Assembly: GCA_965202585.1 (NCBI GenBank)
Contig: OZ241830.1
Location: 60,698,001 to 60,762,000 of the forward strand
DNA length: 64,000 bases
Direction: 5' to 3'
DNA from: Thalia democratica
Lineage: Eukaryota
The position numbers and the translations under genes were made by a program. The notes below the pieces were generated by a model. The model saw nothing but the letters and a program-made list of their open reading frames with translations. It ran no database searches and was not told the origin of the DNA. Below, piece after piece: positions 13,448 to 60,200 of the stretch; position 1 is the stretch's first letter; the number at the start of each line of letters is the position of its first letter.

Positions 13448-13721
13448 AGAATGTTTATTTTGTAACAGCAGAGAGTTTAATATCAAAGTTTTTTAGATCT
13501 TATTTTTAATTTAAGTTTTGTTTATCAAATGATTGTTTATTCAAGCCAACAAAACAATTTTTAACTGTGATTTTTTGTTACCTAAGTTTTTCTGTACTTT
13601 AAGTGTTTACCTTTTTGGTATATTTAAGATTGTTTTTAGTTTAATTTTTATTTTGCGTTATTCACTGATTTCAATTAAAATTTTTTAATGTTTTTTTAGT
13701 TATTTTTGAGACTTCAGATTT

Positions 13722-13727
13722 AATAAA
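13722..13727 (+). promoter_or_regulatory. Candidate polyadenylation signal of IFT140 (also kept at 42387-42392)
   Basis: AATAAA ~275 nt after the stop codon in both copies; weak evidence in AT-rich DNA. Confidence 0.35.
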
Positions 13728-19111: not shown

Positions 19112-19565
19112 CTTTAAAAATGTTTAACTGATTGTTTTAATCTCTAAAGAACTTGAATGTTAAAAAAAGTAGAACATTTTTCAAAATAAAATAAGCCATT
19201 GGTTTAGAGCTTGTTTATCGTTTTTTATCTTACAAGTTTAAACAAATTCTTTTATAAACTCATTATAGAATCCTTTTATGTTAATATATGCTGTTTTAGC
19301 TCCGAATTTATTTCCAAACGCTTTAGTAAATAATAACTTAAAAGTGTGAACTAACAACCAACTCTTCTTTTCCGTTAACTGAGTTTTACATATTTCCTAT
19401 TATATTTAATATTTTGTTGCAAAAATTTTGCTTTGTCGAGTTGCTACAAGTAATTTTTTTATTAATTAAAGAAAACTAATGTAAATGCTATGCTTTAACC
19501 GTAATGAATCTGGTGTTGGTGTATTAAAATAAACTAACCTTACAATATAAACTTTTATAATTAAA

Positions 19566-20160
19566 CAAAAATGTATTCATTTATTGATAAAAGCCATCAA
19601 AGGTCAGCTTCAAAAACCTGCTAGTAGTTTGCTTATGTCAAAAATAATTTTTCAAACACTTTGTCATTTTATTTCTAATTTTTAATATTAAATATTTTTT
19701 TGTTTGTTCCATGTTCAAGTGAGCTGGGTTAGGGATAAGGGTATACAAAAATAAATGTATACGCTAGTATATTTCTTAATTTAATTAATATTTTCTGCAT
19801 TTTAAAACAATTCTAAGATTAAAGTGTTTGTGAAATCAATACACACTTGAATAGAAATTGGTGTATCAATTAAAAATAAGAACTACAACTAATCTAAAAA
19901 GGTTTAAAATCAAGGAAATTATGTTGGTAAAAAGTAATGCTGCGAGGGCTCGAATTCGGGTCCCTGGATTGGAGGGCGCGAGCACTGACCTTTACACCAT
20001 AATTCCACATGAAAGTTATATGTTTTTAGAGATTATATAATTTTGCATGATAATTTTATTGTATACAACTTATTTAGTTTATAATATTGTTTACAAATTT
20101 GTAGCGCTTATGCCTAAAATAAAATAGAAAGTTTGGCAACTATCAATGAGAACCAAAACA
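19566..20160. repeat. ~600-bp direct repeat B, containing a minus-strand tRNA-like SINE head at ~20006-19940
   Basis: Aligns with 15721-16319; A-box-like TGGTGTAAAGG and B-box-like GAATTCGAGCCC. Confidence 0.85.
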
Positions 20161-32800: not shown

Positions 32801-35800
32801 AAAGCTTAATGTTATTCAAGCATGAGCCTTTAAAAAATTTGATAGTAACAAAAGGACTCAACAATTAATAAGTAAAAAATATAAAATTTTAAGATTTATT
32901 ATAATATCCTATAATCTTTAACTTTGTAATACTCAACCAGTCTGGCTGGTAACCCTAGCAAAAAATACTAAGTTTTGCACAAATTAAAACTATCTAATTA
33001 ACTATTAGACAAACTAACCTCAACAGCTGCTGTAGTAGGTACTCATCATCCAAAAAAGTGTGATCTGAACTCTGCATAAAGGAAAAAGTAACAGTAACAA
33101 CTTATAAAGACAAAGGCTTTGAAACAAGCTCAGAAGTTTTAAAACTTTACTGAGGTTCAAAAGACTTTAAAAAAGATTTTTTTTGAGCTTTTTTCTACCC
33201 AGTTCACTTTACAATGATGTTTCAAAGATTAAAAAAACTGAGATGCAAGATTTCAAAGCCACTTGATGATTTTTTTTGACATCATGTAAAAGCATTTTTA
33301 ACATGTCATTGTAAATATAAATGTGCATTATATGATGAACTAGAAGATAAAGTAAAGAATTATTTCAAAGGTTTTGCATGAGAAAAACAATATAGATTAT
33401 CAACATAAACTTTCAAGACTGCTGATTCCCAAACTAGGTCTTAAACTTACACTCACTCAGTGAAGAAAAATAAGAATTTTAGAAGATAAAAGGAGCAACA
33501 ATTATCAAGTTTTATCTTCAACAGTATTGACAATCAAATAGAGTTCGCTCAAGTATTCTACAAAGCTCACATAAACAGTAGAAAAATTAAAAAAAAGTTA
33601 AAATTTACACCTACAGCATCCAGAGCTCTTACTACTACAAGTGCTTTTCTCAAAAGAATTTTCATTGAAAAAAAATTATTTTCTAAAATACTATTTTTGT
33701 ATGATGTCACAATAAAATGTAAGATTTTACAGAATTTATCAAAAACTACAAGTTGAAACACTATGTTAGCATAGCAGGGTGGTTTTTAGCTTTTTCGAAC
33801 ATAAAGTACTTTACATAACTTAATTTCTACCTTTTTTACTGCATTAGTGATAGTTGGTTGAACATATTGTTTAATATTTTAGCTACAGTAATTCATTATG
33901 CTTCTATAAATTACATTGACAACTTTATTTAAGTAAATGAATTAAGTATTTAACTCTAAATTTTACGAAATTGTTTTTTATTTGTTTTAAAGATGTTTAA
34001 CACCTAACAATTTGTATAAGATTTTTTATATTTAGCTTAAAGCCTTTAATTTCATCAGATTACATTTAACTTTTGCAAACTCATTTCAGTTATAATTTAG
34101 TTCGAATCGTTTTGCCATATTTGCCAAAACTACTGAGTTTTTGTAGTCATTGATATAACAACTTTTTGAAGCAGGTAGAAAACAAAAAGCCATATTGTTC
34201 ATAGTGAGTGAATGCTAAATAAAGACACAATTAACAAAATATTTTTGTATGACTGTGAAAAATAACTACTTATATTTGAGTGAAACATATTTTATATCAA
34301 ATAAAACCATCATTACATTATGATATTTCAAGTTCAGTTTTAAGCCACAAAAATGATAAGTTTAAATTTTTCTAAACTCTTTATTTGTTTTAATTAACTA
34401 AATAAGTATTGATATAATACTGCTGTAAAAACTTCTTATGTTGCTAGACTAAATTGTATCTTAGAACTTAGTCTAGTTTTGGAAAGTTATGAACATTAAC
34501 TACTTGTGAGCTGTATTTAAAATGTTTCATTTATATGAAACTTTAGTGCTTATAACTACTTAAATTAATCTTCAAAGTCTTTGAAGCATTCAAACCATAC
34601 AACTATTTATATGAATATCTTAAAGTACAAATTAATTTAAGTAAACAGAAAAATTTTATCAAGGTACCCAACACAAGTAAAAGCTTAGTATTAACAATAT
34701 TGTTAAACTTCTAACAGAAAATGTATTAAAATCAACTAAATCTCATCACCAAAAAACCTTATATGAACTGAGCAAGCCTATATGGTATTATGAAAAGGCT
34801 GATCTGAAGAAAACATCTAGTTTTGAAAATGGAATTCCTTCTAAAACCGAGTTGAGATATAGGAGTGAGGGACCCAAGATCATACAAGAAGTTTTGTAAG
34901 TGATTTTTATTAATTTATCTTATTTTATCACAAGTCCAAGTTTATTTTTGAAAAGGGCTGAAATCTTTCAGTTTAAAATTCTTTGAATAGATTATGATGC
35001 TAAGTTATTCACAAGCTTGTAGCCAATTAGAATGTGTACAAAAGTTTTAGTTGTATGAAGATTTATTCTGAATAAGAATATGTGGAAGTTAGTCCTCAAA
35101 AAAAAGTTTTAATTGTATTTTTAACTTGAGTTTTAAACAATGGTATCTTATTTTCCTAACAAAATTTTGAGGTTTAAAACTTTATTATAACCAATAATAT
35201 AATATTTCATAAAGCTTTATATCTATTTACTTAATTGCTTGAATGATTTGAAATGTTAAGTATTGATAACAAAAAGCTTAGAGTTGCTGTCAGACTATAG
35301 AAAAATAATTATTTCTTTTTTGCAATAAATATTTATAGAAAAAAAAATTGTTCTAAATAATATTTTAAACAACAAAAATTAAAACTTTATGTAAAGTTGT
35401 CAATGTGTCAATTTTTTGTTATTTAAACTTAGTAATTTACAAAAATTAATTATTTTTGTTGATTGTTTTTAAGTTGTGGACATCAAAAATAAGTAATAAA
35501 ATATTTTTGTTTAACACAAGTTTACATTGTTTGTTGTTTATATTAAGCTGTAGAACAATAAGTTTATTTTTGTATTAGTTGATGAATAAATTATATTAAT
35601 ATCTCTCGGTTTGCTACTTTACAAAGACTTAAAGGGTTTTAATTTTAGTTTTATAAACTTTGTGAACTTTATTCTTAGTAATAATTTATTTTTACCAGTA
35701 CTGACGGTAGTTTATTTCTGAAAGTAGTTCAGTATTAAATGATTATTTTTAATAAAAGTAGCATCAAAAACTGTAGTTTTGTTTTAAAATTCAAGCACTA

Positions 35801-35821
35801 TAAACTGATATTTTTAATTAG

Positions 35822-38800
35822 ATGACAAAACAAACTACTGAAGATAAAGATACTACTCTACTTTCTGAAAAAGTTAGTGTTAGTTGTTTTAAGACATACA
35901 CATTAGTTCAATTTCTAGGGTGTAGTACTGCATAAAATCAATCATTTTTAATACATAATTTAATTAATAGTAAATAATTATTATAAATTCCTTATTTAAG
36001 ATTATATTTTGAACCTATTGTTATAACAAAATGTTTACAGTCTTCAATAAGCCGTGAAACGATGAGAGATTTCGTCGGTTTGGACGCTTCGGACTCGCAA
36101 GCACAATCTGCCATGCTCAATTTCAGCTACCATCTTACTAAGGGCGATATGGATAAAGCTTTCAAAGCTATCAAGCTCATTAAAGGGTAAATATCACTTG
36201 TTTTATAAATAAGCAATAGTGTTTTACATAACAAGCTTATCATGTTTAAGTTTCAAATAAGTAATTAAATTAAAATGTTTTAATTAAATTTCATTATTTT
36301 GATCTGAAAAATATTGTTTAATATCAATTTTTATGTAAACAATGTAATTTATTACGTGAAATTGAACTACTTACTACATATGAAGTTTGTGTAATGCTGG
36401 GTTTCCCAATATTTTGTTAAGGTCCCATTTGAAGAAATTAAAAAGGTATTGACCCCTTTCAATGAGATTTTCAAAAAATTACCCTAAGACCTTTTTTTTG
36501 CTCTTCATCATAAACTCAAGAATATCTAATGTAAGTTTCAAATTATGACCTTATGCACCCCATGGCACCTTAATTAGTCACGGCCTTCCTTTGAACCCTA
36601 TGCAGCTTATGGCCCTCAAGGGGTCCATACGATCTACTTTAGGAAGCCCTGGTGTAATGTGTATAGGTTGATATTAAAACGTTGAAAAGCACCATGCAAA
36701 TATTCCGATGTGATACAAACTTTACAGATCTCGGGTGTGGGAGAGCATGGCTCGCATGTGCGTAAAATCGAGGAGGTTGGACGTGGCGCAGGTGTGCCTG
36801 GCAAACATGGGACACGCGAGGGGAGTTCGCGCGATCAAGCATCAACAAGATCACATCAACGCTCGTGTTGCCAGGCTCGCTATCGAGCTCAAAATGAATG
36901 TCAGTTCACATTTTTTAGCTAGTAGTGTAGTAGTAGTAGTGAATAGTAGTAGTGTAAAGTTAAAAGTTTTGTTAACGTTTGTAAATCTTACCGTATTTTC
37001 TTACATAATTAGTTAATTATATTTGTTTCAGGGTGGCCTCTGAACCTGGAGTTTGAGAAATTTTGAAAAAAAAAATCGAAATTTTGAACAATTTTAGCAT
37101 GTTAAGTAGTAAAACTTTGATTTAACTCGAAAAATCTATCATAGAGATAAAAGAAATTCTCCTCATTAAAAATATTTTTAGTTAAAGTACACATTCAAGT
37201 AGCTTTACAGTATCTTTTTAATGTTGTTATAGTATTTAAAACAGTTTTTAACCTTAAACTTAACTTTAAACTAAAAATAGACCTAAAAACGTGTACTATC
37301 AAAAACCTTAAAAAAATCAGAAAACCTGGAAGAAGTTTCTCAAAAACCAGTGGCCACCCTGTTGTTATTAAACTTGTACACATGCTGTGTTTCAAACGAG
37401 CTTTTTGTTCAATTAACAGAATGAAGCAGAAAGACTTTATATTGATTGCGAACGTTACGATTTGCTAAATGAATTGTACCAAGCGACTGGACAGTGGTTA
37501 AAAGTTTGTTTTGTTTATTGTATAGTATTGGTGTCAAAGTTATAAAAAAGTACATAGATCACTCTCAAAAAGTGCTTGTAGTGTATTATGGCTCACAAGT
37601 CATTTCTTGGTAAAAACACAGAACTAATATCTCAAACGAGTTTAAATTTTTTAAACAAATTAAGTATTTTTTCAGTATTGTTAATACTATGTTGATTAAA
37701 ATTTTATATGTTCTACGTTGCTTTGTATTTTATTTATAAATAAAATTTAAGGCGCTGGATGTTGCTGAGAGACATGACAGAATACATTTACGTTCAACTT
37801 ATTATAATTATGCAAAATTTTTGGAGTCTTTAGGCGGATTTAAAGATGCAATTATGTAGTAAGTATTAATTTTATTTAGTTTTGGTATATTGCAACAGTT
37901 ACATAATAATTCAAATAATTTTAGCTATGAAAAATCAGGCACTCACCATTTTGAGGTGCCAAGAATGCTTTTTGACGAACTTGATATGCTCGAATCTTAT
38001 ATTATGAATTCAAAAGATAGGTTAGTTTAAAAATTTTGAAATTTAACGTTTGTCTTTTTCATTTTTATAAAGTAGTTTTTAGTATGAACACTTTAAGTCT
38101 CCAATTTAAAACAACAAATATAGGAAAGGATTAATAACTTTAGTTTCAAATAGTTTTTTTTTTATAAAACGCTTACTAATAGTAATTTTATTAATTGTAA
38201 AAATTGATTCGGCTTAATTATTTTCATAATAAAAAGTATGTAATTTAATTAAAACAGAAAGTTTCGCAAATGGTGGGCACAATACATAGAATCAACAGGC
38301 GATATGGAAAATGCGTTGAAATTTTACCAACAAGCCGGAGACCCATTGTCGCTCGTTAGAGTTTACAGTTACTGCGACCAACTTGATAAAGTTTGTTAAT
38401 ATTTGCTCGAATATTTTTACTCTTGAATGATTTTTGAAAATATTATAAGAAATTTAAAGATTGTTTGATATGTTTAGCCTAAATCAATTTGCTTAAATGG
38501 CTTTAATTAATTTTTTTGTTATTTTAGTTCAATAATTTTTTTTCAATAGTTAATTTATTGTTTCTGGTATTTTTAAAAAGTTTTTCATTAAATTTAAACA
38601 TACGAACCAACGCAGGCAGCTCAGGTAGCAAATGAAACGGGAAACAGGGCAGCCTGCTTCCATCTCGCCAGACAATATGAAAAAACTGATCAGCTCGACA
38701 AAGCAATCAACTTCTTTGCCCGCGCCATGGCTTACGGAAATGCTATTAGAATTTGTAAAGTTCGTCACTTAATATTTGTAAAAAAAAATATATAAGTTAT

Positions 38801-41800
38801 AGCACATGTAGACAATGGACCAATTTATTTTGGTAATCAAATACTTGAAGACTAATTGTTAACTTAAACAAACAAAAATATATAATTTTCTTATGTAAAA
38901 TAAACAACGAAGTCAAAAATTTAGGCCATTTTATATCATAGACAATTCGTTTATTTTGGAAATTATCAAATTTAAATACTGTTCGTTGGTAATAAAATAA
39001 ATTTAGGAACATGGGTTCGAGGAGCGGCTAATGAACATGGCACTTTTGAGTCCACCTCATGATATGGTTGAAGCTGCTAAATATTACGAACAAACTGACA
39101 ACCTCATTGATAAAGCTATTATGCTCTACCACAAGGTTTCAATCATTTATATTTTATCAGTGTTACTAGTGTTAAGCGTTTTTGTTTCTTTACAAGACAA
39201 AATTTAAAAGAAATGCGCTTTTACACTTTAAATAGTTTGTATGTAAAATACTATGTTTTGCATTAGTTATTTATATAAACGTATGTGTTTTCATTACTTT
39301 ATCATATATAAATAACTTTTGTTAAGACCCGTTAAACTTTAATATACAAAATTAAAGGAAATTTGTTTTTACACTGTAGTATTTTATGAGCAAATAGTTT
39401 TAATGCTTTTACTATCTTTGTACATATTAAAAATAAATAATTCAATAGCTATTTTATTAGTGTTTCATAAATAGTTTTCATAAAGTGTTTTGTGAGTTAA
39501 GAAATAATGTTACAAATTTGAAACATTAAACAATGTTACAACAACGCAGGCGGGTCATTTTGCAAAGGCGATAGACCTGGCGTTCAAGTACGAACAGTTT
39601 GGCGCGCTGGAGCTCATTTCGGAGGATCTCAATGAAAACACGGACGCCAGCTTGCTGACGAAATGCGCGCAATTCTTCGCACAGCACGGTCAGCACGATC
39701 GAGCCATTAAGCTGCTCGTGTCCGCTAAAAACGTTTGTGCTTGTTCATGTTTCAATTCGAATAAACTTTACACCTGAATGTTGTGTTACAGATCAAAGAA
39801 GCCATACAGGTTTGCAGCGACAACAACGTTCGCTTGACGGAAGAGCTCGTCGAAAAGCTGACCGTTTCCAGCGATCACCCCGAAATCACCCTCAAAGAGA
39901 GGTTTGTTGAAACTTATAATGAAAAATTGTGTTTTTATAACTGTAAATATTTTATAAGCAAGTATGTGGTACTTTTTTATTAGATACATTAATTGAAAAG
40001 TATCAATATCATCAGTCGTTCTACAGATAAATTTAACCAAGTTTTGTGCAAATCTAAAAAAAACTTTTTGATACAAGTTGTTGTTTAAAACTTCGGACTG
40101 CTGAATTTAAATTATTGATTAAGAAAAAATACATATTGTTCAATACAATCAAAAGGCAAAAGCAGCTGATGATGTTGGGCGACTGCTGCATGAAGCAGGG
40201 CGAGTACCTGGTGGCGTGCAAGAAGTACACGCAGTCGGGCAACGTGGACAAGGCGATGCGGGCTCTGCTGAAGTCGGGCGACACGCACAAGATAATCTAT
40301 TACGCGAACACGAGCAAGCAGCGCGACGTGTTCGTCATGGCGGCGAACTACCTGCAGTCGCTCGACTGGCGCAACCACCCTGACGTAATGAACAACATCA
40401 TCGCTTTTTACACGAAGGGAAAAGCTCACGAGTCGTTGGCCAACTTTTACGAGGCCTGCGCTCAGGTATGTTTTATGTTGAGCTTTTGAAATTTTTTTTT
40501 TATTAAAAGTTAATAGCGTTGTTCTTTCTGCTTTAACTAAACATATGCTAAATTTGTATCTGATATTTTTTAAATTTTTGACAAATTTTTATACAAAAAT
40601 AAATTCCTGATAGCTTTGTTCACCAGTTTACAAAAAAAGAATGAAAATTAATTATGGTTTATATTAATTTTCCAATAAATATTCAGATACGTTGTAACAA
40701 TTTTTCTGATATAATTTTTTGTATCTGAGTAATTAATAGTAGTTTAAAGGCTTGTATACTTTTTTGTGTGTTTTATTTTTTTGTTATTATACTAAGGTGT
40801 TTAATTTTTTTTCAAAGCGTTTTAAAATTTGTAAACAGGTAGAAATAGATGAATATCAAAATTATGAAAAAGCAGTCGGTGCATTGACTGAAGCTTTTAA
40901 GTGTTTGTCAAAATCAAAAATTGAAGATAATGAAGAAAAAGAAAACAAATTGACAAGTTTAAAAACAAAAATAGCACTTGTTAAAAAATTTGTCTCAACA
41001 AGAAGGTAGTTATATATTTATCATTTGTTTTTCAAAATAAAAAAAGTTTATATTTTGTTTATTAGTTATGAGTAAATATTTCAAGATCAATTAAATTCCT
41101 TTTTTATTAATTGAGAATATCTTTTGAAAGCTATATTAAACTCAAAAACGTTTTTATTCTAGTGAAATATTCTAATTTTTTTAAGTTTGTTAAAACTAAA
41201 AGCTGTTTTAACTAACTAAAAAACTTTCTAATACTTACCTAAAATACTTCAAAGAAAATTGCAGAAGCAATAATTTTTTTACTTAATACTATTATTGCTC
41301 ATAAAAAGCCTTGTTGTATTTTTGTAATGTATAGTTTATACAAAATACAACTTTTATTTTATGCTTTTTAGTAAAAATTTGTTTAATTTCTGTTATTTTT
41401 CTCAATGCAAAACAATTTTTTTATGAACTATAAGTTGAGCTCAACGTTACTTTAATTTAATTTTTCATAATTATGAGTTGATAGTAATTTTGACAAAATT
41501 TTTTTCATTAAAGATTGTTCGAAAGTGATGCGGAAGAAGGATTGAAGCAATGTTCAGTTCTTCTCGATCACGCCGATCTCTCTTCGTCTCCAGTCAGATA
41601 CGGAGACGTTTACGCGTTGATCATCGAACATTATGTCAGCCAACAACAATTCGAACGAGTAATTATAATTTGTTTATATTTTTCGTTACAAGATACATCT
41701 TTAATTTATTCATTAAATAATTAAATTTTTTCATTATAAAACTTTGTTTGTCAACCAAATTAATATATTAAAAATCATGTTTTTTTTTCAAACTTTTTAT

Positions 41801-42113
41801 ATTTGTTAACCAATTGAACATAAGTGCTAATGGAACGTTTTTGAGTTGCTAATGTTTCCCCGAATTCGAAATAATTGTCACTCATGTAACAAAGTAATTA
41901 TGAAAGGCTTACGAGTACGTGTTGGAAGTGAAGGAGAGAGTTCCGACGATCCGCCTCCACCACTTCGTCTCCTCCGCCGCTCTCCACCAAATATCAGCCA
42001 ATCAGCATCCACAATCAGAATCCTCCTCACATGATGACGGATCGTCGGCAGATGTGAAGGAGGAAATTTACCAAGACGACAATATCACAACACACAGTTT
42101 CGCTTTTCGATGA
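35822..42113 (+). CDS. IFT140: 5'-truncated duplicate of IFT140 (TPR half only; 15 exons, 726-aa open frame); expression unknown
   Basis: Exon-for-exon copy of 7066-13447; every GT/AG is retained and there is no stop or frameshift in 2181 coding nt. The first exon starts ATG ACA AAA (35822). Hand comparison gave 11 synonymous and 4 replacement differences. No copy of the upstream exons was seen between 15.6 and 35.6 kb. Confidence 0.8.
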
Positions 42114-44066: not shown

Positions 44067-44689
44067 CAGTGCTTCCTCACTTATCCGGCCATGTTTGGCA
44101 AGTATTTTTGTAAATAAGGCCGGAAAAGAACAATATATCCTTATTTTCAAGTCTACCTCAATAATATTATATAATTCATATAGTAAACCGTACACGTAAT
44201 ATCTGTTAATTTAATTTATTTTAACTTTTTTCAAAAAACCAAAGCATTAAAACAGAGAAAAACTAAACGAAACAAAACTTTTTAAAATTTAAATTTAATT
44301 TACTGAAATAAATTTATATCGTGAACAGTTGAAATAATATCGGAAATCTTTCTAAATGAGCATAAAGATTTGTTTGACATAACTTTCTTGTTTCTCAACA
44401 TAAAACACAAGGAATCGGATAAGTTGTGAAACACTTTCTTGTACTAATGCTAAGGTATTTCCTGGTAACATTCTTAAATGCAATCCGGTTTCATCGCAAT
44501 TAACAATTTAATTAGCCCTTGGTTGGATATCTTATATTTGTACAGCGCGAAAAATATGAATTATAAAACCAAATTTAGTTTTTAGAACATAGAACTGATT
44601 TTATCTAAGAAATTAATCTACTTCTAGTAAAACTGGTTGAATAAGTGAGGAAATAGATAAGTGAGGACCGGATAAGTGAGAAAGCATTG
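44067..44689. mobile_element. Tc1/mariner-pogo (Tigger-like) MITE with TA TSD, between the IFT140 copy and the WASHC4 3' end
   Basis: TA|CAGTGCTTCCTCACTTATCCGG ... CCGGATAAGTGAGAAAGCATTG|TA. Only its left ~55 bp survive in the left duplicate (~15406-15460). Confidence 0.88.
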
Positions 44690-45257
44690 TAGCTTGTAAA
44701 ATACACTAAAATTTATACTTATTTTTGTTTTATGTTTCGTAGATTTCAATAAAACACTAATTACAGTAATAAAGTTTTTAAAATTAAAACACTTGATAAA
44801 CTAAGAAAAACAACTATTTTAATACAATGAAAAAAGTGTAAATTCTAATCATGAAGTTTAATATATGATTAATAAAAAAACAATTGCACAACATACACAT
44901 GATCACGAAATCAAAAAAATAAAAAGAACAAATAAGTTCAATGGATGAAAATGGAATTGATTACTACAAGTTATTCTTTAATAACTAGATAAATATATAA
45001 ATAACTTAACTCTAAACATGAATTTAATGTTTTAGAAAGTAATTCCAAGCAGCTTTGAAAGTATTTAAAGCAAAATAAATTTTTCAAAACTATTTTTTAA
45101 AACTGCAAATGATTTACTTCAAGCAATAATGAGTTCTAAATAAAAGTTTTTTTTTTTTGCAGTAACTGTTTTATATATTTAATAAAACTGCAAATATAAT
45201 TACTACAATATAGTATTTAATTAAATATACTAAAAATTTTAATTATCACAAAAATTT

Positions 45258-48200
45258 TTAAGCTTCTGGTTTAGATGTTTTTTCCTCATTTTCTTTCTCA
45301 GCTTCTTGTTTATTTTCTGACTTCTCCTCAGTTTTTTGCTTTTCGTCGTTTTGAAAGAATATTCGGGCGCTTCTCAGGGAAAATTTCAACAAATCAAATT
45401 CCTAATTGTTATTTTGCATTTAAATATTCTGAATAATATTTGATTATGGGTGCTTTATTATGTTAAAAATATTTATGGTATGAATAGAATATTTTAAAAT
45501 ATTTCTTTGACAAATTTTATAATTTATATATATATATATATCTCTTTGTTTTTTATTTTATAAAAAGTATCTTACAGTATATACTATAACTTTTCAAACA
45601 AGATTCAATGTTAATAATGTATACCCCATATGCCCATAAAAAGTACTGTATTAGCCTTGAATGCAATTAGACTAATGAAAAGTATTGAAAAAACAAAAGA
45701 GCTGTATAATAAATAGTTATTTAGTTGTTTACTACATCTGGACCCGATGGGTCAATAGTTTTTTACTGATGACAAGACAAAAAAAAACAAAAAAAAAAAT
45801 AAAAAACTTAAAAATCAATAAACTTGTAAAATTTTCACATAAAACGACTACATTTTTAAATAATTTAGTAGTTTTGTAGAAAAAATTTACCCTATTAGAA
45901 AAACAATATCGGGATACTAATTTATTGATTCGATAGATCACCAACAATAGTAAAAACATAAAAACTAAGATGTTTACTTCAAAAACATTTTCAGAAACAC
46001 AAAAACTCAATATACTAACCCGATCGTATATTTCAATTCTCTTCAGGGCCAGTATTCTCGTCTGCTGCAAGCTTTCCGTCTCGCTGTAACTCGATGTCTT
46101 GGAATTCATCTCCGCATGCTGGCGCTGCTTGTCGTGGTTGTATTTTGATTTGACGCTGTCGAACCAGTGGAGCGAGTCGAACCTGGAGTTGGAACCCATC
46201 ACTTCCAGCAAGTACGCCAGTCCTTTAAAAAATTCTTTTTAAAGATTACTAAATCACATTATTTCAACTATAGTTGTACATCATAATTTATTACATGGTT
46301 ATTTCATGCTTTATCACCTTGAGCAAGTAAAACAGACCTTTCATGAATTTAAACATCTTTTTATAAACTTGTATATAAATAATAACTTCCATAATTATTA
46401 ATTAATTCTTCATCTTTACTTAATTATTTGTTATTATGTAATACATTATTAATTGATCCTTAACGAAAACAAAAACCAATTTTTACAAGTAATAAAATAA
46501 TTTAACTGTTTTGTTTTTTATTTCTATTTTAAGCGTTTAGATTTGATATTAGTAATTTACTTAGTTATAATAATTGTAGTGTATTTTTGATATATGTATA
46601 ACAAGCTTATGTCAATTATTTTAGTGTTTTCTTATTACCCATAGCAAATCCATCATCAGTGAATGCTGCTCCTTCTTTGTTCTTTTTATTCATTTTCTCC
46701 TTGCTGATTATTATATTTTCCACAAAGTTTATTGTCTAAAACAATAAAGTAAATATTTTATATCAACCACTTCTTTGTTTTGAGTGATTTAAATATAGAA
46801 CATTTTAGTTGTAAAATCTTAAAATGCAACACTATCACGTTTAAATTTTTTCTGCACCTTTAGTGAACAGATTTTAAATTTTCAACATAAAAGCCTATTT
46901 CATAGCGTTCAGACAAAGAAATAAAATCAAAAACATAACTAACGACAACAATGAATAAGTAACTTTTGTAAAACATAAACAGTAAAGATTTACGCAATAT
47001 TCCAAAACACTTTTTTCTACAAAAACACTTTAACATCAATTAATAAAATTCAATAAAAAGTTCGAAAATTCATATCAAAAATGCGATAATGTAGAAATGT
47101 CTGCAATGTTTTAAGATAATTATTATAAAAAAAATAATTAATAAATGAAACAAACAAGCGCGGGAACGATCAGGTAGAAATATCTGCAGTGTTTGTGCTG
47201 CTCCCCCCTCAAAATTGGCGCGAAAGTTTTCACCAGTTTGCTGAACAAGTCGCCGCCACCCCCTAATTGCTTCACCAATCTCTTCACTATGACGTCAAAT
47301 TGCGAGAACGAACTGTTTATCTGGTGTGATAAAAAAATATAGTTATGATATTGTTTAATATGTTGATATGTGTAATGTTTGGGTGGCACGACTATTCGAA
47401 TTAGTACAATTCAAATTCCGACAACTCGAATTCCTAAAAAAATTCAAGGGGCCACAAATAAAAAAGGAATGTGTATTTATCAAAAATAAAAAATACATAT
47501 CTAGGTAACATTAATATCTACAAGCCATTTTTCTTTTTGCAAATCACTAAATATTTTTTGAGATATGGTTGAATAAAGTAAAAAATATAGTTTTTGTTTA
47601 GCAATTTTAAAATATTTTAAACTATATTTTAGATTTTGCAAAAATGTAAAAGTGGCTTGTAGTTGATAAGATCTTAATATGTACTTTTTATTTTTATAAA
47701 ATTAATAACACTTATTGAGAAATAATCTTTAAATATTTTTTCAAGAATTTGAATTGTCGGAATTTGAATTGTCATGTAACTGTTGTCATATGTAAAGTTT
47801 GATGCAAAAAAAAGTTTTATTATACTATACGTGAATGTGAAAAAAATATATATCAAATATCAGAGTTTTAATTTATTTTAAGAATGCTTTCTTAATTAAC
47901 TTTGCTCGTAATTTAGCTTGTTTCTTTTATCAAATTATTTAATAAAAACGATTATAACTAAATCGATAATAAATAACTGTTTTTTCTAAGATACATTAAA
48001 AACTTTTAATAAAAAAAAAACACTTTTTTATATAAAAACTATATAAGAAACATTTATAGAACTTTTCTTTATACATAAATTTAAAACTTAATTAGTCATT
48101 TTACTTACACAACTAGTATACTAAAATCATTATGCTAAAACTTAGCAGTAATTGTACAAAATTAACAAACTAGCTTTGTTCAGATAATTTATCTATGTTC

Positions 48201-51200
48201 AAAGAGTTTAACATATAAAAAACATTAATATCTGAATATTTAACTATATAAGTTTTGAACACTTTAACAGCTAAAACTAGAAACCTATTTCATGATTGGA
48301 TACTACAAGAATATTAAATTTAAATATTAAGCAATTATAATATGTTAGAATTTAAATTCTATCTTCTGTAATCTTTTTAATCATTTGATAAAATTAATAC
48401 TACACAATACTTTATTTTTAATCAACAAAGTTTTAAAAAGCTCTACAAAAATTTTTTTGTTTGGAGCTAAAAGTCAAGTAAAATTGTAAAAATAATATAA
48501 AAATTTATAAACTTCTTCACTGATATCGTCAGCTTTAGCGAGTTCTTCGAAATTGACAATTTCTTCAACATCGGGCACAAACGAAATGGCGTCACTGCTG
48601 TAATGAAGACCCCCATTTCTCATAATTCGCACGAACCCCATAGCGTTTCCTGGAAAAAATCAAGAAAAAATACTTATTTTATTTAAAAATGCGTGTTTAT
48701 AAATGCTAAATAAAAAAATAAACACTTTTTTCTTCGAACTTTCTCTAAAAAAAACACAAAATTTCTATTGACTTTGTAGAAATATTAATATTTTTATACA
48801 TATAAACGTCGTTAGTTGAATAAATTACAGTATACTACCGCTTAAGTAGGCACTTTTTTTTGGTACGCACCCCGGCTTAAGTACGCACTTATCAAGAAAG
48901 ACAAAAAAAAAATTCTAAATTTCTTATATTTTTTTCATATATTTATAACAAATTTAAATAAATTTTTAAACTAGGATGAGTAGTCCTGAGTAGTCTAAGT
49001 GGCTTGAGATTGTGACAGTCTTTTAATTAAATGTTAATAAATTAAATACTTATGTAGTGGTTGCAGAAAAGTGAAAAGAATAATGATATTTGAGCTGTAA
49101 TGCTATAAAAAAAATCTAGATGACAATGTTAAAAAAAACCTACAAATACAACATAGTTAAGTCATAATTTAAGTTAAATGTACACGCATTTATATTTTGA
49201 AAATGTTTGGTAAACAGAAAGTAGTTTGGTACTTTTCCTCTAACAAAACAAAATATGGAAAATATGGCTTAATATTCTTTTTTATATCATTGACTGACAT
49301 TGACTTTCTATATTAAATGTATGTATTAATTATGTAGAAACTTTTTATAGAAAAAATAAATCATTTCAAAATCTATTAACAAATTTTGCAGATTAGAATT
49401 ATGTATTAAATGTTATTTAAAATAAAAAAACTTGTTTATTTGGTTTAATTATTTGGTGGCTAGTTGTAAGAAAAAAAAAAACAACTAAATTTCATATTAT
49501 ACTATGTCGTCAAAAAGTACGCACTACCCGTGCTAAGTACGCACTTTTTGGTCGGGTTCAACTTGCGTACTTAAGCGGTAGTCTACTGTATTCCTAAAAA
49601 ATGTCCAAAATTTTCAATCTTAAATACACATTACGTTTTAACTAGTTTTTAAAGTAGAATACTATAAACTTAAGTATTTAGCAAAATAAATTATTTACTT
49701 GGTAATTAGAAATAGTGATATTTTGAATACTTTATTATAGACTTCATTACAAAATGTTTATAAATATTTGACTGACAACAACTCAAAATTTATTTGATAT
49801 ATAAGGTTTTAAAAATAAGCTTAGCTTTCTTAAATTAACCACAATACTTCAACAATAACTATTTTAAAAGTATAACCAAAATACCCATTTGAGTGATGAG
49901 CTCTCGAAACAGGCTGATGTAATTTTTTCTGCCAATGATCAGCTGTTTCACCAGGCTCTCTGCTCTCTCGTACGGAAACTGGTGGTCCAGTCGATCTCGG
50001 TTTTCTTTGAAGTACGTTCTATCCTGAAATTTTAAATGTTTCATTAAGTTTGTAAAAACTTTATTGGTTAAGGTCAAGTGCAAAATTTAGCTTCGAAGTT
50101 TGCTAATTATGTTATTTTATATAAATGGAAACTATATACATAGAGTAAATTCAAGTTACATTTTAGGTGGAAGTACTACAGTGGAAAACTGTTTAACAAG
50201 TGTGTAGCACATAAACATATAAGCTACAAGAACGATTTTTTTCTTTTTACATCAATTTGTTAATATTTTTGCTGAAAAGATTTACTTTATCAATACCGGG
50301 TATACTTTTAGGAAATAACTAATTAGTTAGCATTTTTTTTGTAATGTTTATAAATTTTGCAAGACTTCTTGATACTTACTTAATTACTTAATAAAGAACT
50401 TAGTGATAACTTTTTTTTTTATTGAACGAAATAAATCATTAGACTTTAAATAAAACTACAAGTAAGATATTAAAAAAAACACAGGTTCAAAGTTTTTTTT
50501 ATAAAGTTTTAATGCAACAAACTATTATGAATGATAATTTATTATACATAATTTATTCGATAGAACAATTATTTGAACAAAATCTTTTTAAATAATTAAG
50601 TATAACGTTTTCAAGATAAATATTGGAAAAAATAATCATAAGTTAACAAAAACAAATTACCCTCATCATTGGCGATTTAACTTGGTCGTCAATTAAGAAT
50701 TGAGAAAAAATTCGAAATCTTTGTTTGAGTAGTTGGTATGTGTAATTGATCTGAAAATTTTATATCTATTATGATTCATATACAGCTTATGTTTAAAAAA
50801 AGTAGCTCAAGTTTCATTTGATTAAAGATATCATAAATGAAATTATTTTAAGATAGCAAGTTAACAAAGTATACATAATAAAAGTACAACTATTTTATCA
50901 TGATTCGTATACAGTTTATGTATAGAATAAAAAGTAGGCCAAGTTTTATATAACAGAAGTATCATAAATGAAATTATTAAGATAGCAACTTAATAACTAC
51001 AGGGTTGCCACTGGTTTTTGAGAAATTTCTTCAAGTTTTTGAAATCACATTTTTTTGGGTCTATTTTTAGTTTAAAGTTAAGTTTAAGGTCAAAAACTGT
51101 GTCAAATAGTAAACAAAACTGAAAAGATACTGTAAAGCTACTTTAAATATGTTTTCTAATAAAAATTTTCTTGATGATGACATAAATTTTTTATCTATAT

Positions 51201-54200
51201 GATAGGTTTTTCATGACATATCAAAATTTGACTACTCAACATGTAAAAATTGTTTAAAATTTAAAGTTTTTTAGTTATTTTTGTTTAAAATTCCAAGTTT
51301 TTTTTCAAAATTTCTCAAACTCCAGGTTTTTTAGCCTAAACTGACAAATTCCAGGTTTTGTGGCAACCCTGTATCTAAAATATAATAAAACAACAAGTGA
51401 GTACTAACAGTGGTGTTAATGATGCCACTTCCATGAGTTCTTATCGAGTTTGCTATGTGCTGTATGTTGATGGTGTTCAAGTGCTTGTTGTTGCTTTGCT
51501 TTTCAACAAACAGCTGTAAATTATTAATAATCATTTTGTTTGGATTGTAACTTGTATACTTTTGATTTAGCTCAAGAGTGACAAACAAAAATCTCAACTT
51601 GCAGCCAAGGAGAAAATCTACTTGAACAATAATTTATTACAACTGATTATTTCGTTAATTTTATTAACTGAGTGAAACATTGGTTTTCAAATAAATTCGT
51701 CATTCAAAAAATTTAAATTAAATTTAAATATACAAACAATGTACCTGGTTGCTCAAGCTGTACCTGTAAGTGCTTGTGAACACGTCAATACTCTTCATAA
51801 TATTCAGCACGTCCAATCCTTGCTCCAATTGCTGATTGGGTAGATGTACCTATTAATAAGTTTAACCTTTAAAAATATGTCAAAGTTTATAAAACTTAAA
51901 TAAAATTAATTGATGATAATACCATGAATGTGAATACTTTCATTAAATATGTTTAAATTTTACAATTTTTTTTTAATCTATTAACTTTATTACAGTTTAC
52001 CAGGTAAGACTTTTTTTAAATTAGGTTGCACAAAGCTAAAAAAATACTTTAAATGGTTAAAATAAATAATCAAACTTGTTGCATTTTAAGATTGTACTTG
52101 TCAGTCGCAACTTTCCTCATCTTGCTGTAAGTTTTCCAGTCATGCAAAGCAACGGTAGTGAGATTGTAGAAAGTTTGATCCAAATAGTGAGTCACCATAC
52201 CTTAAAAACATATTGATTGAGATAAGTAAAATAATAAACCAAAACTTAATCGTTTAAAATTTTAAGCTACGACTTTCATCAATTTGTTTATTGTTTTATA
52301 TACATAATAATGAATTATCTTATACCAGTTGCTGCTCATATTTTGAAAAGCTTTATGAAATCAAAATTGCTTTTTAACTTTAGTATTAAAAGTAACATGC
52401 AATTTATTTTAATTTTATGATTGATAGATTACCATTCAGTTCAACTAACTTACTAAAAATATAACTACTACGTAAAATAAAACTAGTATAAACTTAAGAT
52501 ATAAAATTGTAGTACTAAAATCTACAATTAAAAAATGCAAAACACTGCAAACTTACCTTTAATATCGAGAATGATGCCCATGAAACGGATGGGTTTAAGG
52601 GACAGGGACTGGTTTAAGGGCTTCACCCCCACGTTGAACGGGTTTCTGTCGTCCAACTTCAAGTGGGTGTGCACCGACAACCTCAAGTCGTTCTCTACGT
52701 CTGTGTTTTGTTGTTTGATAAAAATTACATGTATACATAGCTTTTAATAAAGAATGTTTAGGATTTATAACTGGTACAGTATATATAATAATACATAAAA
52801 CATCAGTATAGTTTTTAAATCATTTAAATCTTAAGTCGTTCTCAACGTCTGTGTATTTTGTTTACAAATTCATTTTAAACTGTACATGCATACATTTCTT
52901 AATAAATTTTAAGAGGGATTGTAAAATATATATAAAATCTAGTTTTCTAAAAAATTTTATAAGTTTTTTTTAAATATTTTACAACTAAAAACAATACTCA
53001 CTCTTGAACAATTTTTCAAGGAAATTCTCTTTGAACATTTCAACAGTATCATCTCTGTAGCTTTTGTAGAGAGTTGTTGAATTTTCAAGATGAACTGCTA
53101 ACTTCAAATAAGGTGCACAATCTTCGAGTGCGGACATCATGAACTAGTAAAAGGTAAACACATTTTGCTAAACGAAAAACAAATAAAAATAAACGTTTCT
53201 ACGTATTTAATTATTTATACATCATATTATTTATTTAACTTGTTAAATATTTAACAGCAAACGTTAAACTGAATATTAGAGTAGCTATTAACTTTTGGCT
53301 TCATAAATGGATAAAATGATGAAATAAAAATGCATGCTTACCATATAAAGATACCTAATATATCTTCAATTTTTTTTAAGCAAGCTAATGTTTGCTTATA
53401 AAATAGTAAAGAATTAGTACCTTAAGACTTTCATCAAAAATCTAATTAAAAAACTAAACATTAACCTGCAAATCTGTGACGTCTAATGACTGTATGTGAA
53501 AATAAAAATTCTAAAAAACTTATAAAAAAAGGTACAAAATATTATCAAAGTCTAATTAAAAAAACATCTAATTAAATAGTTTATACAACAACTAATCGTG
53601 AATAAAACAAAATCAAAATTATTATCAAACTAAAAAATCTAAACAGCAAACTTGCAAATCGGTGACGTCTAACGAAGAAGTGTGAAGGCTGGCGAAGTAA
53701 GTGGGCAGTATGGACCGGTGCCAGTACAAGTGACCCTGCTGGCAACTTTCGTCTGCCCTGTTGAGCAATTGGGACAGCGTGTCCAGCTGCCACATCTGAC
53801 TGTGGACCACCAAATACTCCTCGTCCCTCATCAAACGCTGTTGTAAAAAAAATAGTCCAGTTATTTGATTAACTTTAATTTTCAAAGTTTAAACCTCCGT
53901 TGTATTTTTGTAATTAATTGTTTAAACTTTGATACAACTAATTGGGTAAATAACTTAAAAATTTTATTTTTTATCCATGGCAAAGTTGATTCACTGTATC
54001 GTAAAAACTTTTGTAATAGGTTATAAAACTATTTCGTGTGAAACTTGAGAAAGTATTACAAAGAAACTAATTATAAAATACTACAGCCGAAATGCAAACT
54101 ATATGTTATTTTACAAACCGATTGGTTAGCAATGGTGAGGGACAGTGAAGCAACCAGCAATCGTTGCGTTGTGGGGACGTTGTTTATATTGTTGCAAAAC

Positions 54201-57200
54201 AACACCAATGCAGACAACATGTCCAATCTTCTACTGCTGTACCGCTTGTCCGATACTAACTTTTTCTATAAATAGAAAATTGTTTAAATTTCAATATAAC
54301 TTTGTTTTATACGACATTTAACAACTGGCCATACATTTTAATTTGCTAGAGGTTTTAATAGTAATGTAATTGAAAGCTTATTTAACCTTAATGATTTAAA
54401 ATAACAAAAAATAACGTAAATTGGGCACAAAAATATCATCAACAGCAAATTATATTAGAAAAAATAATGAAAACTATCACATCATCCAGTACAACTAAAA
54501 CTTTATAATTTATTTTAATTAACAAAGAAAACGACAGTGCTGGTAAACTTAATTTAGAACAAATATATCAATTTTTTTACAAAATGTCTACAGCTTCATA
54601 AGGTAAAAAACAAAAACCATGTTCTTATATAAACCACTAAACCTTAATAGCGAGCTTTCTGTCGATAATTTTGAACTGAATTTTTAAACAAAAGAATAAA
54701 AACAATACCAGATTAGTAACTTATCAGACCATAAACTTGTTTTCAAACAAAAAACAAAATTTTATGTTACTATTTGTGTTACTTAAAATTAAACAATTTT
54801 ACAACTTTCAAACAAACATATGCGTTTGAAGCGAACAACACCTAAACAGCGAGCGAGAAAATCAAGTTTGCTGATAGACTTAATTTAAAGTTAAAATAAT
54901 CTTTTTTTATTAAATTTTGTATAAATACAAACAGGCATACCTTAACAGCGAGCATGCTGTTGAGAATGTTGAACTGAATCCTCTGCACTACATGTTGCGA
55001 ATTGAACGCAACATGCTTGGTATGCCGGTAGAAGCAATCCTGCACGCTCTTGATCAAACTTACGAACTTGCATATCAATAATACTAGCTGCTTGCTCATC
55101 GGACGTGATAATATGATGTGTAGGTTCAACAGGCAACTAGTCAAACGTTGAAGCCTCCCACCTAGTGATATTCCCTTGAAAAAATTTTATTATAATTTTT
55201 AGTTTCAATTTGATTTTTCAAATAACTTGTTTATAGATAAAAGCACCAATCTAGCGAAAAGCATCTTTCAGGTTTAATTTCTCCAAGATTGAAGATAAAA
55301 ATATTATTTTTCAATTAACTCGGAAGTAGATAAACTTTAAAATATCTACAGTACACTGAAGCTGGTGTAAAGAAGTAATGTTTAGATTAAGTAAAGTTAT
55401 TTATTAGAACAGTATTTAATTAAAATGGTTTTGAACATACAATAAAATTGGTAGAATAAATTGTTTTTTTTAATGTTTTTAATTACTTTATTTTAATATG
55501 GTTTTCAACTAACTCTTAGGTAAATAAACTAATATTTCTCAAGTTTTCTAAAAACGGTGTAAAGCAGCACTGTTTATATAGAATAAGTAAATGAATAGAT
55601 ATAATTGAATAGTTTTTTATTTTCAAAAAAAAACTATTACAGTTTTCAACTTCATTTCAAGGAGAAATACAAATCTTATTAGTCAAACTTTTACGATTGT
55701 CTAATCTTTTAAATAGATAAAAAAGAATGGAAAACAGTATGAAACAAACTTCAAAATAAGTTTTGGATCTTTCAGTGAGCACAGCAGCAGCCGATGTGTT
55801 TTCAGATATAACTTCACAAGATGCAGTCATTTTCACCAGCCATTTGTTGATTGAAAAGAAATAATGTTGGAACTCTCTAAAAGTTAGTGTTCTTACTTTC
55901 ATTGGTTTCAGAATATTTTTTTACAACATACCTTTATAATTACTCTCTAACTCTTTAAAATTATGTGTATAAAATAGAGATTCATATCATTCTTACTCGA
56001 CTATAACTTGAAAATAATTTTTATTGGCTTATGAATTTTTGTCATCTCTTAAAACCTTTTAATTACACTTAATGATTAGTTTATCAAAAAAATAAGATTA
56101 AGTCTGAGGGAAACTTATTATAAAGAAATTATTTTTTTTAATTACATTAAACTTTTCATGTATAAAATCTCAAAACTACTACTATCATACCATAGTTTTC
56201 GTCTAATTAGAAGTAAACAATTATTCAAGCTTGGAAAGTTACCTGTTTAGTTGGCTGACTTTAGTATTGAGCCAATTGGCACGATTGCTTTCACACTGGT
56301 CTTTCATTCTACTGGTTATAATTCCGACTTGTTCGTTTGGCAAATTGTCCATGAAAAAATTTTCAATCAACCAAGTTACAGGACCAAACAAGACAACACA
56401 TGGCAACTAAAAGTAAAAACATATATCTTTTTTATTTAAAAAACCCATTTAAAAACGTTGATGTTTTACAAAAAAATATAACAACTTAAAATACAGTTAT
56501 TTAAACAAATTTAAAACTACTACTTTTAGTATTTATTGTTAATATATTTGTACATTTGTACTTAAGCATATCAAAGAAACAATAACAAAATAGCTGGTAC
56601 TGCTACTTATCAAGTCATTTAAGAAACTAAAATTCTATGAAAGGAAACTTTAGATGTAAAGCAAATTTATAAGTATAATTTAAGTACGTGGTTAAAAAAC
56701 ACACTTACTTTTTTATTGACATCCCAGATTTTATTAAAAAACTTTTTGTCAATATCATGGAATAATCTGGAGTTGAACACAAACAGGCAGCAAATTGCAA
56801 CAAATTCTTGCGCATGGACAAACTCACATACGTTATCACCTGTATTTTTAATAAAAAGTTCTGTAAATACCTTATAAAAAACAGCTTCAAACAAAAAAGG
56901 GCTAAAATAATTTAATTTATAATATCATATTTTTGACTTTGTAAATACATCATAACGGACTTTAAAGTAAAGATATTAATGTAACTTAAATACAAAAAAA
57001 AATTTCTAGTACTATTTTAGTTATATTTGATATAAGACACATAATTGAAATATCGTACTATTTTTAAATATTTAAATTTTCAACAATTTTTTAAATCTTA
57101 GGCTGTTTAAAAACAATACAGTTCTTATTTAAAATTTACGTTTCAAAAGCTTACCCAGTTTAACCTCCAGTTTATTAAATAAAAACTTTATGTTAGTCAT

Positions 57201-60200
57201 AAACTCTTCAATGAAAACAGAATTCTTGGATACAGGGATTCCTGAATCATCAAAATCTTGATCGATGCAATGCTGAAATTTAAAAATTTTAATCAAAAAA
57301 TACAAATTTAATCAAAAAACATTTCTGTATTGTTTTATCTTAAACAGAATTTTGTAGTTTTTATTTTTTAGTTATTCTTAAATTAGCTAAAAATTAAGTA
57401 GTTAAACAAAGAAAGATTTTAATGGTTAAAAAAACATGCTGAAGTTTATATAATATACTTAAAAAAATGTATTTCAACTGCCCTTATCTTTTATCTGAAA
57501 ACAAGTATAATTTTATAACATTGAAAAAATAAGCTCAAGTAAGCTTTAAGTTGTAAGAAATTTAGCTAGAAATCAAAAACGTAATAAACAATTAGTTAAG
57601 TATAATAACTACTGACTTTTGTTTCAAAAATAGGTTTATTTTCAGCTTATAATACTTTAACAATCTAACAGTAAAAGTTGAATTATTAAATTTGCACTCA
57701 AATATTTTTTATCTAGATGCAAGTTAATAGAGTTTGTTATTGATTTTTATTGTGATACGTTATTTTTTTTTTGTCATTATTAGTTCTTTATAAAAAATTG
57801 CTAACAGTTTCTGTCTAAACTTTTGTTTTATACAAAAAAAAAGTTAAAATATAAACAACAACAATTTTTTTTTTACGTAAAAAATAATTTTCTTAAAAAC
57901 AATATCAAAAAAATTATTATGATTTTTGTTAAAGAAAACAATAAAGTAGGTATTTGTAAAAATAACAAACTTTAACAAGTATTTGACATATTTTTAATTT
58001 AAAACCACAAAAAATAAAACAAACAAAAGGTACAATTTAGTTTATTAAATTTTAAATAAATACTTAAACTTAATAATCCTTATCAACAGATTTTTTTAGA
58101 AACAAATTTACAACCAAAAGGTATAGAAATGTAAATATTTTTTTATGTTCTGTTTACTTTAGTAAAACTGTCTAAATTTAATTTTCAACAGTTAAAATAC
58201 AGAGTTTTATGAAGAATATAAATCTTCAAGAAACTTTGTACTTACATAAAATAATCGGCTGGATATCACCAAAGTATCAACTTTTTTAACAAGCTTTTTA
58301 AGATGTTCAAGCTTGTCTTTTGTTACTTCAAAACTCGAAGGATTCAATTCAATTGACTTGATCATTCTGTAGACAAATATTATATTATTTTCAAAAAAGT
58401 TAACGTTTCAATATCAATTCTGCACTAGGTAAACTTTAGTTCACTAGTTGTAAATAAGAACAAAAAATTAAAACTAAACACTTTAAGTAAATTGTTTTAT
58501 ACAGTTAAAGCAAAAAATTAAAAAGTATCACATATATACGTTTTAAAGTAATTTTTCACAATTAACATATAAAATAATATAAGGTTAAAACGTTACATAG
58601 CTTTTAATTTTGTAAAGGTTGACAGATTTAGAAATATCGTTTATAAAACATAAAAATACTAGCTTAACAAATAATTTTAATACGCAATATTTATAACTAA
58701 AATATGAAAACAGTTTTAGGCACAAATGATTTGTCTAATAAAGTTATAAGCTATATTTCTACTAGTACTCTTCCTTTAGTACCTATAAATAACAAAAAAA
58801 AATTACCCTTTGTAAATATTCCAATGAGTTTGAAGAATGCTGTTGTTTGCAACTATTTCATCTATAGTGTGTAAAACTTTTAGTAAATGAGCTATTTTTT
58901 CAAATATGATTGAAAAATGAACTTGGCTGACATCAATAACTTTAGGCAAAGTCCTTCAAGTAAGTTAATGATCACATAACTTTGAAATAACATATATCGC
59001 TTTAGATTTAACGAATAAAATTTATAATTTAATTGCAACAACACGATTACAAACTTATTCTTATTTTTACACAAACACTCTTATATTGTAATAAGTATAT
59101 TGTATATACTTGTTATATAAAGCTGCCATTTGCTGAATTGAATTTTTGAGAACTTCACGGCACCTATGCACAAAACAGAGCAGGTTTTGCAGAGTGGGCA
59201 TTATTTTAGAAACTTTAACATAAGTTTCTGATATTTTACCTCCATTTTCAACATCAAGCTTTCCTGTAATTAAAGTTTCTACTTGATGAATTACCAATGG
59301 ATTTTTTTTATAAAACTGAGTTATATTTTTAAAATAAACAATTTTATTACCAGTTTCACCATAAAAAAGCAACTGATTGTAAAAAGAAGTTTTAGCCTCA
59401 TCCTCCAACAAAAACACTTCATTGCAGAGGGCAGATAATGTGATCAGAACCTTGTTCAGCACTTTGTTGTCTGTTGTTATAATGTCAACAAATGATACTT
59501 TTTCCTCTGCTTTTGTCTGTTAACATTATTAATTAGTTAAGTATTCACTTAATATTGACACTTCAATGAAAAAATATTCTTCTGTCTAAAACTGTGTGGC
59601 TAAATAATGCCCCTTTGAAATATGATAAGATTGCTTAACTTAGGAATATAACCAAACCAACTTAAGCCATAGAAAGGTAAAACACTTTTTTATACAAAAA
59701 TTAACTTTGGCTTTTATATGAAAGCTTTTAATACAAACTACAAACCAGTTTTTATAGAATTCAAAAATATCATTTAACTTTTAAGATATTTTATTTTTTG
59801 TAAAAAGTTTCCGATACAAACATATGGACTGCAAATTTTTTGGGGTCAATTTTCTTGGAAATTTTTAGATTCACTAAAAATCTATCTTCTCCTTCATTTT
59901 TTAAGCAATCATCTTCAAATTTTCAGGAAGTATTCCTTATATTAAAAGGAAAAAAATTTACTAATGAAGTTCAATAATACAAAAAAATTAAAATTTTATC
60001 ACAAAAACTATAAAAAAAAGTGTTATTTTTTCAAAATAAAAATATTTTTACAAAACTTTTTTTAATTCCAAAGTAACGTTTTTTCTCATTGTATAAAAAT
60101 TAGACTGTGAAAGTTTGAAGAAGAATGCTAAAAAAATGTAGGAGGATATAGATTTTAAATAAAATAGTTTTTTTTCGCTGTTTTAGTTTTCCATTCCCAT

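Follow-up and report, generated by a model that had tools for sequence, protein, structure and literature searches.

A partial duplicate of IFT140 in Thalia democratica whose exons have diverged far less than its introns

The 64,000-nucleotide (nt) window of Thalia democratica contig OZ241830.1 analysed here contains IFT140, which encodes a subunit of the IFT-A complex, and a second, incomplete copy of the 3' half of that gene. The duplicated segment within the full-length gene is called copy A and its downstream counterpart copy B. The exons of the two copies are nearly identical while their introns have diverged considerably, a contrast that the preliminary description of this sequence attributed to purifying selection on a half gene without a promoter. 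The best explanation, given about even odds, is that copy B is a young and probably polymorphic partial duplicate of an allele that had already diverged, and that the contrast between exons and introns reflects selection on the functional gene. The purifying-selection signal is genuine, but it is not assignable to the copy B lineage after duplication; selection is real, but probably not on copy B.

Structure of the duplication

The window is AT-rich (27% G+C) and contains no N. Self-BLAST and a MAFFT alignment reveal one large direct duplication in it, 6824-15597 against 35579-45793, at about 94% identity. Boundary alignments place the corresponding left breaks at 6825/6826 and 35580/35581 and the right breaks at 15597 and 45793, inside an A-rich low-complexity run; this A-rich right end is common to both copies. 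In copy A the duplicated segment measures 8.8 kb, of which 2.15 kb lies downstream of IFT140 (Table 1).

Exon 12 of the duplicated half matches residues 1192-1291 of human IFT140 (PDB 8fgw; E = 3e-42). As a query it has 799 relatives in a representative library, and the Pfam domain TPR_IF140-IFT172 is annotated on its closest relatives. With five full-length homologues, tblastn finds the IFT140 exons once, at about 900-13000, and the second half again at 36000-41700. The TPR half in copy A is about 57% identical to a vertebrate-length IFT140 of 1462 amino acids over 716 aligned residues, and the complete arrangement of two beta-propellers and a TPR solenoid in one frame is found in 871-6777 joined to copy A. 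Propeller exons exist only upstream of copy A; neither tblastn nor Pfam detects any next to copy B in the window. Set against IFT140 of the IFT-A complex (PDB 8fgw, 8bbf, 8bda), the copy B exons align with residues ~740-1462 of the 1462 in the human protein, the TPR solenoid, and both beta-propellers are missing. Copy B thus contains the TPR half only and cannot encode a complete IFT140.

A processed (retro) pseudogene is ruled out, with all 14 introns kept and alignable and the A-rich right end present in both copies. Across 7066-13447, G+C content varies widely among exons, being lowest in exon 13 (0.26) and highest in exon 12 (0.56), and that of introns is 0.18-0.36.

Homology-guided choice of splice sites recovers the same 15 exons that the preliminary description had listed, from 7066-7116 through 13241-13447 in copy A and from 35822-35872 through 41907-42113 in copy B. 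All acceptors are AG and all donors GT, leaving 28 splice sites intact; exon lengths are equal in both copies, and both frames are open over 727 codons and end at the same stop. The RNA contigs agree with this model, with eight GT..AG joints listed and the remainder implied by one continuous spliced contig of 3616 nt. Copy B exon 1 opens with an ATG in phase 0.

Divergence and the signature of selection

The coding sequences differ at 15 of 2184 nt including the stop codon (0.69%). Eleven of these changes are synonymous and four replace a residue (E56K, V349I, L471V and L510V, from A to B); seven exons are identical, and no exon contains an indel. Earlier hand counts of the coding differences and identical exons are reproduced by these values. 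The introns differ at 225 of 4073 nt (5.5%), with a further 160 gap columns, the 3' flank at 108 of 1965 nt (5.5%) and the 5' flank at 13 of 242 nt. Divergence in the 3' UTR is about 3.6%, and exon 15 has four B-private sites. The exons are therefore eight times better conserved than the introns (exon versus non-coding, Fisher P = 7e-29), which confirms the contrast noted in the preliminary description. Misalignment as the source of the high intron divergence is rejected, because non-coding divergence is still 5.2% at 10 or more columns from any gap with high-copy repeats excluded.

Conservation ends sharply at the exon borders. Intron divergence at 7-20 nt from the exons is 4.6% on the donor side and 7.7% on the acceptor side, as high as in the deep intron, and the longest runs identical between copies, 151-244 nt, are exons plus 15-50 nt. 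Such edges are more in line with selection acting on the coding sequence than with tracts of DNA conversion. Exon changes run toward AT in copy B in nine cases against four, which is not significant, and non-coding changes are symmetric (126 versus 117).

The ratio of non-synonymous to synonymous substitution rates (dN/dS) between the copies is 0.092 by NG86 and 0.14 by YN00 (Fisher P = 1.5e-5). Had copy B alone drifted over the whole divergence time, with copy A frozen, ~60 exon differences would be expected against the 15 seen (P(<=15) = 4e-12). Synonymous sites are also conserved: the proportion that differ (pS) is 0.025, and synonymous and four-fold sites are 2.2-2.3 times less diverged than non-coding DNA (P = 0.004-0.005). 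Four-fold sites differ at 8 of 270 positions, compared with 18.7 expected from composition-matched non-coding rates of 9.4% at G/C sites and 4.4% at A/T sites (P = 0.005). At three of the four replaced residues, copy A has the common residue of 42 homologues and copy B an unusual one; K56 is found in 0 of the 42.

The open reading frames (ORFs) closest to exon 12 are 89% and 82% identical and their Tara contigs (L001-L005) ~80% identical in DNA, which is too far removed to polarise the two differences in this exon. Exon 12 yielded no DNA or transcripts of the same species in large protein collections, where the closest entries are these more distant Tara relatives. Relatives of exons 12-13 at the same DNA identity occur in several ocean metagenomes, and a metatranscriptome (X9, below) contains identically spliced IFT140 transcripts whose exons differ by 2.6%. 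The plankton seems to harbour several related lineages side by side.

Junction, dose and distribution of copy B

Positions 35380-41379 were compared with Logan contigs of the DNA-like data sets X1 and X4, of X5 and of the metatranscriptome X9. X1 and X2 are one sample, possibly the source of the assembly; X3 is a metagenome, and X4 represents a second individual. X5 bears the same organism label and behaves as RNA, with spliced contigs and zero depth in intron-only bins. Only depths per contig or per site were used, as repeats and holes make depth summed over 200-nt bins unusable.

The junction between spacer and copy B is directly visible in X1, where one contig of 203 nt (35432-35634) matches with 0 mismatches at depth 33.1 and runs from 147 nt of spacer into copy B, where it includes five B-specific letters (35590-35615). 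A retained haplotig is therefore unlikely. Other X1 depths are 88-110 for contigs resembling copy A and 46-59 for clearly heterozygous branches, while the contig for exon 10, where A and B share an identical run of 244 nt, reaches 120, or ~88+33. These rough depths are compatible with copy A at two doses and copy B at about one. B-specific words in X1 occur at about one third of copy A depth, and at site 36338 the depth is split into 57.8 for the A letter and 85 for the B letter.

Copy B is unevenly distributed among the samples. Its 31-mers are shared with copy A to 37-38%, and the share of B words found is 0.38-0.39 in X4, 0.41 in X3 and 0.69 in X1/X2; the values for X4 and X3 are close to those expected from copy A together with the spacer flank. 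An X4 contig (39388-39926) passes unbranched through exon 10 with all eight letters those of A, whereas its X1 counterpart does not extend beyond the identical run on either side. Copy B looks absent from X4 and X3. Exact-match scans of JGI metagenome contigs with an exon-12 stretch and with the spacer/B junction gave no match.

The contigs are fragmented and branch-rich. In X1 and in X4, a contig follows the duplicated segment to 35663 and then continues into at least 255 nt absent from the window, which could represent another copy boundary or an insertion allele.

Expression and shared variation

Three exon letters are private to copy B at sites visible in RNA (T at 35836, A at 36155 and C at 39028), and at all three the X5 and X9 contigs read the letter of copy A. 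Upstream of exon 1, the RNA contigs of both data sets continue into the copy A exon ending at 6777, representing the full-length mRNA, and none of them covers 35380-35779, including the 440 nt upstream of copy B exon 1. Sorting RNA at diagnostic exonic sites, as the preliminary description had proposed, hence reveals no copy B transcript among the contigs. Copy B looks unexpressed, with weak expression possible as contigs lose minority variants.

Two X5 RNA contigs are unusual. One begins to match copy B only 9 nt before exon 11 (39783), after at least 255 nt that the window lacks; the other departs from copy B 36 nt into intron 12 (40501) and enters sequence that neither copy contains. Their source might be a third partial copy, a chimeric transcript or an allele of different structure.

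Many of the differences between the copies recur outside them. Among the 40 best-supported alternative letters against copy B, 29 are those of copy A, and their combinations are mosaic. X1 has the A letter at 35762 and the B letter at 35773; X1 DNA and X5 RNA both read G, as in copy B, at 40211 and C, as in copy A, at 40328; X5 RNA matches copy B throughout exon 7; and an X1 contig covering 40576-41114 departs from B at 4 sites where A departs from it at 13. Several A/B differences thus segregate among sequences resembling copy A. The wild transcripts of X9 differ from copy B at 30 of 1153 exon letters, compared with 7 of 1153 between A and B over the same exons. At four times the A-B distance, this places the divergence between the copies within natural variation.

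Origin of copy B

A partial duplication at the DNA level copied the TPR half of IFT140 together with ~2 kb of downstream sequence, the copy landing 20 kb on beside WASHC4. Copy B lacks a promoter and the propeller exons. The two copies would descend from two diverged alleles of a single functional gene, or would later have exchanged sequence with such alleles, and for most of the time since they separated both lineages would have been functional IFT140 alleles. Replacements, indels and some synonymous changes would have been purged from the exons while introns and flanks drifted to 5.5%, and the contrast between them would have been inherited from selection on the parent gene, not made by selection on the half gene. 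We infer that copy B is probably young, hemizygous and not fixed, apparently present in one dose against two of A in the sole sample that clearly contains it. The apparent lack of B transcripts, the low dose of B and the differences shared with A-like haplotypes mean that the selection signal is not pinned on the half gene. The earlier claim therefore stands as to the signature of selection, seen in the dN/dS and in the shortfall of exon differences, but is not supported as to the half gene being its target. A recent duplication joining diverged alleles, which the preliminary description had listed among its alternatives, is instead favoured by dose, distribution, expression and shared variation.

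Duplications between the homologous chromosomes of a heterozygote start as two different alleles. Such an origin would explain the allele-sized divergence, a low dN/dS without any function of the new copy, and the A and B letters shared with segregating haplotypes; neither the event nor the donor allele is observed here, however, and simple unequal crossing-over leaves no spacer. Among the young and still segregating duplications of other animals, partial duplicates form the largest class (PMC3449122). Like copy B, the segregating partial duplicates of C. elegans and Drosophila are DNA-level copies that keep their introns, are truncated inside the parent gene, have no promoter or 5' exons, lie near the parent and are apparently unfixed (PMC3449122). 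Copy B is unlike them in that A and B are already 5.5% apart in non-coding sequence despite its young appearance, and in having a 20-kb unrelated spacer.

Several points weigh against a captured allele of the functional gene. The 20-kb spacer is unaccounted for by simple unequal crossing-over. No copy A allele resembling B along its whole length was seen, and the copy A haplotypes of X1, X4 and the assembly resemble one another far more than any of them resembles B, so that a deeply diverged donor allele must be assumed. The 2.3-fold deficit at four-fold sites needs selection on synonymous sites or some homogenisation. Junction support covers the spacer/B break at 35580/35581, one of three duplication junctions; the presence of B in X1 is possibly not independent of the assembly, and its absence from X4 and X3 is drawn from word shares and contig shape. 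Logan contigs, moreover, drop minority variants, may take mixed paths and give rough depths.

Copy B might instead be functional and under purifying selection of its own, yielding either a TPR-only protein from the exon-1 ATG or an alternative 3' cassette reached by long-range splicing from IFT140 exons further upstream. Its intact frame and splice sites, the in-phase ATG, the dN/dS of 0.09, the sharp exon edges and a number of exon changes far below that expected from drift of B alone would all agree with this, although an intact frame is expected by chance given only 15 differences. RNA evidence speaks against it: no contig has a B-private letter or extends over the region upstream of exon 1, and the one upstream joint observed connects exon 1 with the exon ending at 6777 and is accompanied by the copy A letter at 35836. 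A copy that looks absent from one individual and under-dosed in another, and that has the non-consensus residue at three of four replacements, including a lysine seen in no homologue, makes a function of its own unlikely. Interlocus gene conversion, or another form of homogenisation that keeps exons alike while introns escape, would allow the copy to be old and non-functional. Conversion between paralogues has been reported mostly for exons, diverged introns being thought to impede it (PMC3966223), and the case here shares with the Caenorhabditis paralogues direct repeats that lie close together, a greater similarity in exons than in introns, and a synonymous deficit (PMC3966223). The reduced divergence of synonymous and four-fold sites and the mosaic A/B letter combinations in other data sets, with direct repeats 20 kb apart, are in its favour, though mosaic contigs can also come from path choice in a de Bruijn graph. 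Conversion tracts should ignore exon borders, yet intron divergence is full within 7-20 nt of them, with no tract-like gradient, and the remaining differences are strongly protein-constrained, unlike in Caenorhabditis, their low dN/dS being unaccounted for. The exon-limited conversion that the preliminary description had also considered is accordingly improbable, even if the synonymous deficit fits it. An exon-precise variant, in which repair was templated on spliced IFT140 RNA or cDNA, would produce both full intron divergence up to the splice sites and a synonymous deficit, and copy B need not be functional; we consider it very improbable.

A false duplication, in which A and B are two alleles of one locus misplaced in series by the assembler, would be consistent with the allelic size of the divergence, with B words being plentiful only in the probable source sample, and with a right boundary in low-complexity sequence. 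The short-read contig that crosses from spacer into B-specific letters contradicts it, as do the two-copy depth of A-like contigs relative to heterozygous branches and to the shared exon 10, and retained haplotigs do not usually have 20 kb of unrelated, gap-free sequence between the copies. Half the read depth on each copy or a lack of spanning reads, which the preliminary description had named as signs of such an artefact, is not what the contigs display, with spanning examined at the left junction of B, and an assembly error is highly improbable.

Neighbouring features and repeats

Table 1. Features of the duplicated region (positions in the window)
Feature	Position	Strand	Evidence
5' half of full-length IFT140 (beta-propeller exons), single occurrence	871..6777	+	tblastn of homologues 907-6777; Pfam Beta-prop_IFT140_2nd 6254-6589; RNA joins exon ending 6777 to duplicated exon 1
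Copy A of duplicated segment: 3' half of IFT140 and 2.15 kb downstream	6826..15597	+	self-BLAST, boundary alignments
Copy A: 15 exons, 727 codons and stop, TPR half of IFT140	7066..13447	+	splice model; homologue identity; RNA letters
Spacer M, 20 kb, without homology to duplicated segment	15598..35580		self-BLAST; Pfam CUB exon 18956-19123 (-); internal repeats
Spacer/copy-B junction, break 35580/35581	35432..35634		one X1 short-read contig, 0 mismatches
Copy B of duplicated segment	35581..45793	+	self-BLAST, MAFFT, boundary alignments
Copy B: 15 intact exons, 15 nt and 4 residues different from A; no adjoining upstream IFT140 exons	35822..42113	+	splice model, difference counts
1.5-kb segment exclusive to copy B downstream flank (insertion in B or deletion in A)	44121..45654		alignment gap
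WASHC4, convergent with copy B	45735..59519	-	Pfam WASH-7_C 45735-46238 (-), WASH-4_N 59070-59519 (-)

According to a translation check, the duplication ends on the right a few hundred nt past the last recognisable coding residues of WASHC4. A duplication containing the last WASHC4 codons is rejected, that part of the ORF being a poly-T translation artefact, and the ancestral gene order is consequently not deducible from the WASHC4 overlap. The 1.5-kb segment exclusive to copy B contains a short minus-strand ORF (44355-44507) with a CDETG motif, which we take to resemble pogo/Tigger-type DDE transposases; this ORF has no Pfam match.

The spacer is partly composed of repeated elements, including a direct repeat of 600 nt (15720-16319 versus 19565-20160, 88% identity) and further short repeats at 22.4-26.6 kb. 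In an intron of the IFT140 5' half, a 178-nt unit forms three tandem repeats with 90% matches (3899-4423). Intron 3 of both copies contains a ~300-nt repeat (8395-8695 and 37069-37371, plus strand) that is also found at 50990-51272 on the minus strand and, as fragments, at 30616-30721. Its summed k-mer depth is 2.8e5-4.1e5 in DNA runs against ~90 for single-copy sequence, implying thousands of genomic copies, and it is present in RNA contigs as well. A second high-copy stretch at 36380-36579 in copy B intron 2 (7680-7880 in copy A), with a depth of 7e4-1e5, coincides with a ~74-nt indel between A and B and probably represents a small mobile element in which the two copies differ. Rfam has no match in the window.

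Implications

If the synonymous deficit came from exon-precise homogenisation, the locus would bear on RNA-templated repair in animals. Expression and fixation of copy B, if demonstrated, would make it a rare example of an IFT-A subunit's TPR half existing on its own, and it might then affect cilium transport in a dominant manner. The IFT140 duplicate serves mainly as a warning: where a genome is highly polymorphic, a partial duplicate without function can display a low dN/dS and exons conserved far above its introns when each copy derives from a different allele of a functional gene. An intact structure and the dN/dS between paralogues are therefore not enough to demonstrate that a new copy is functional.

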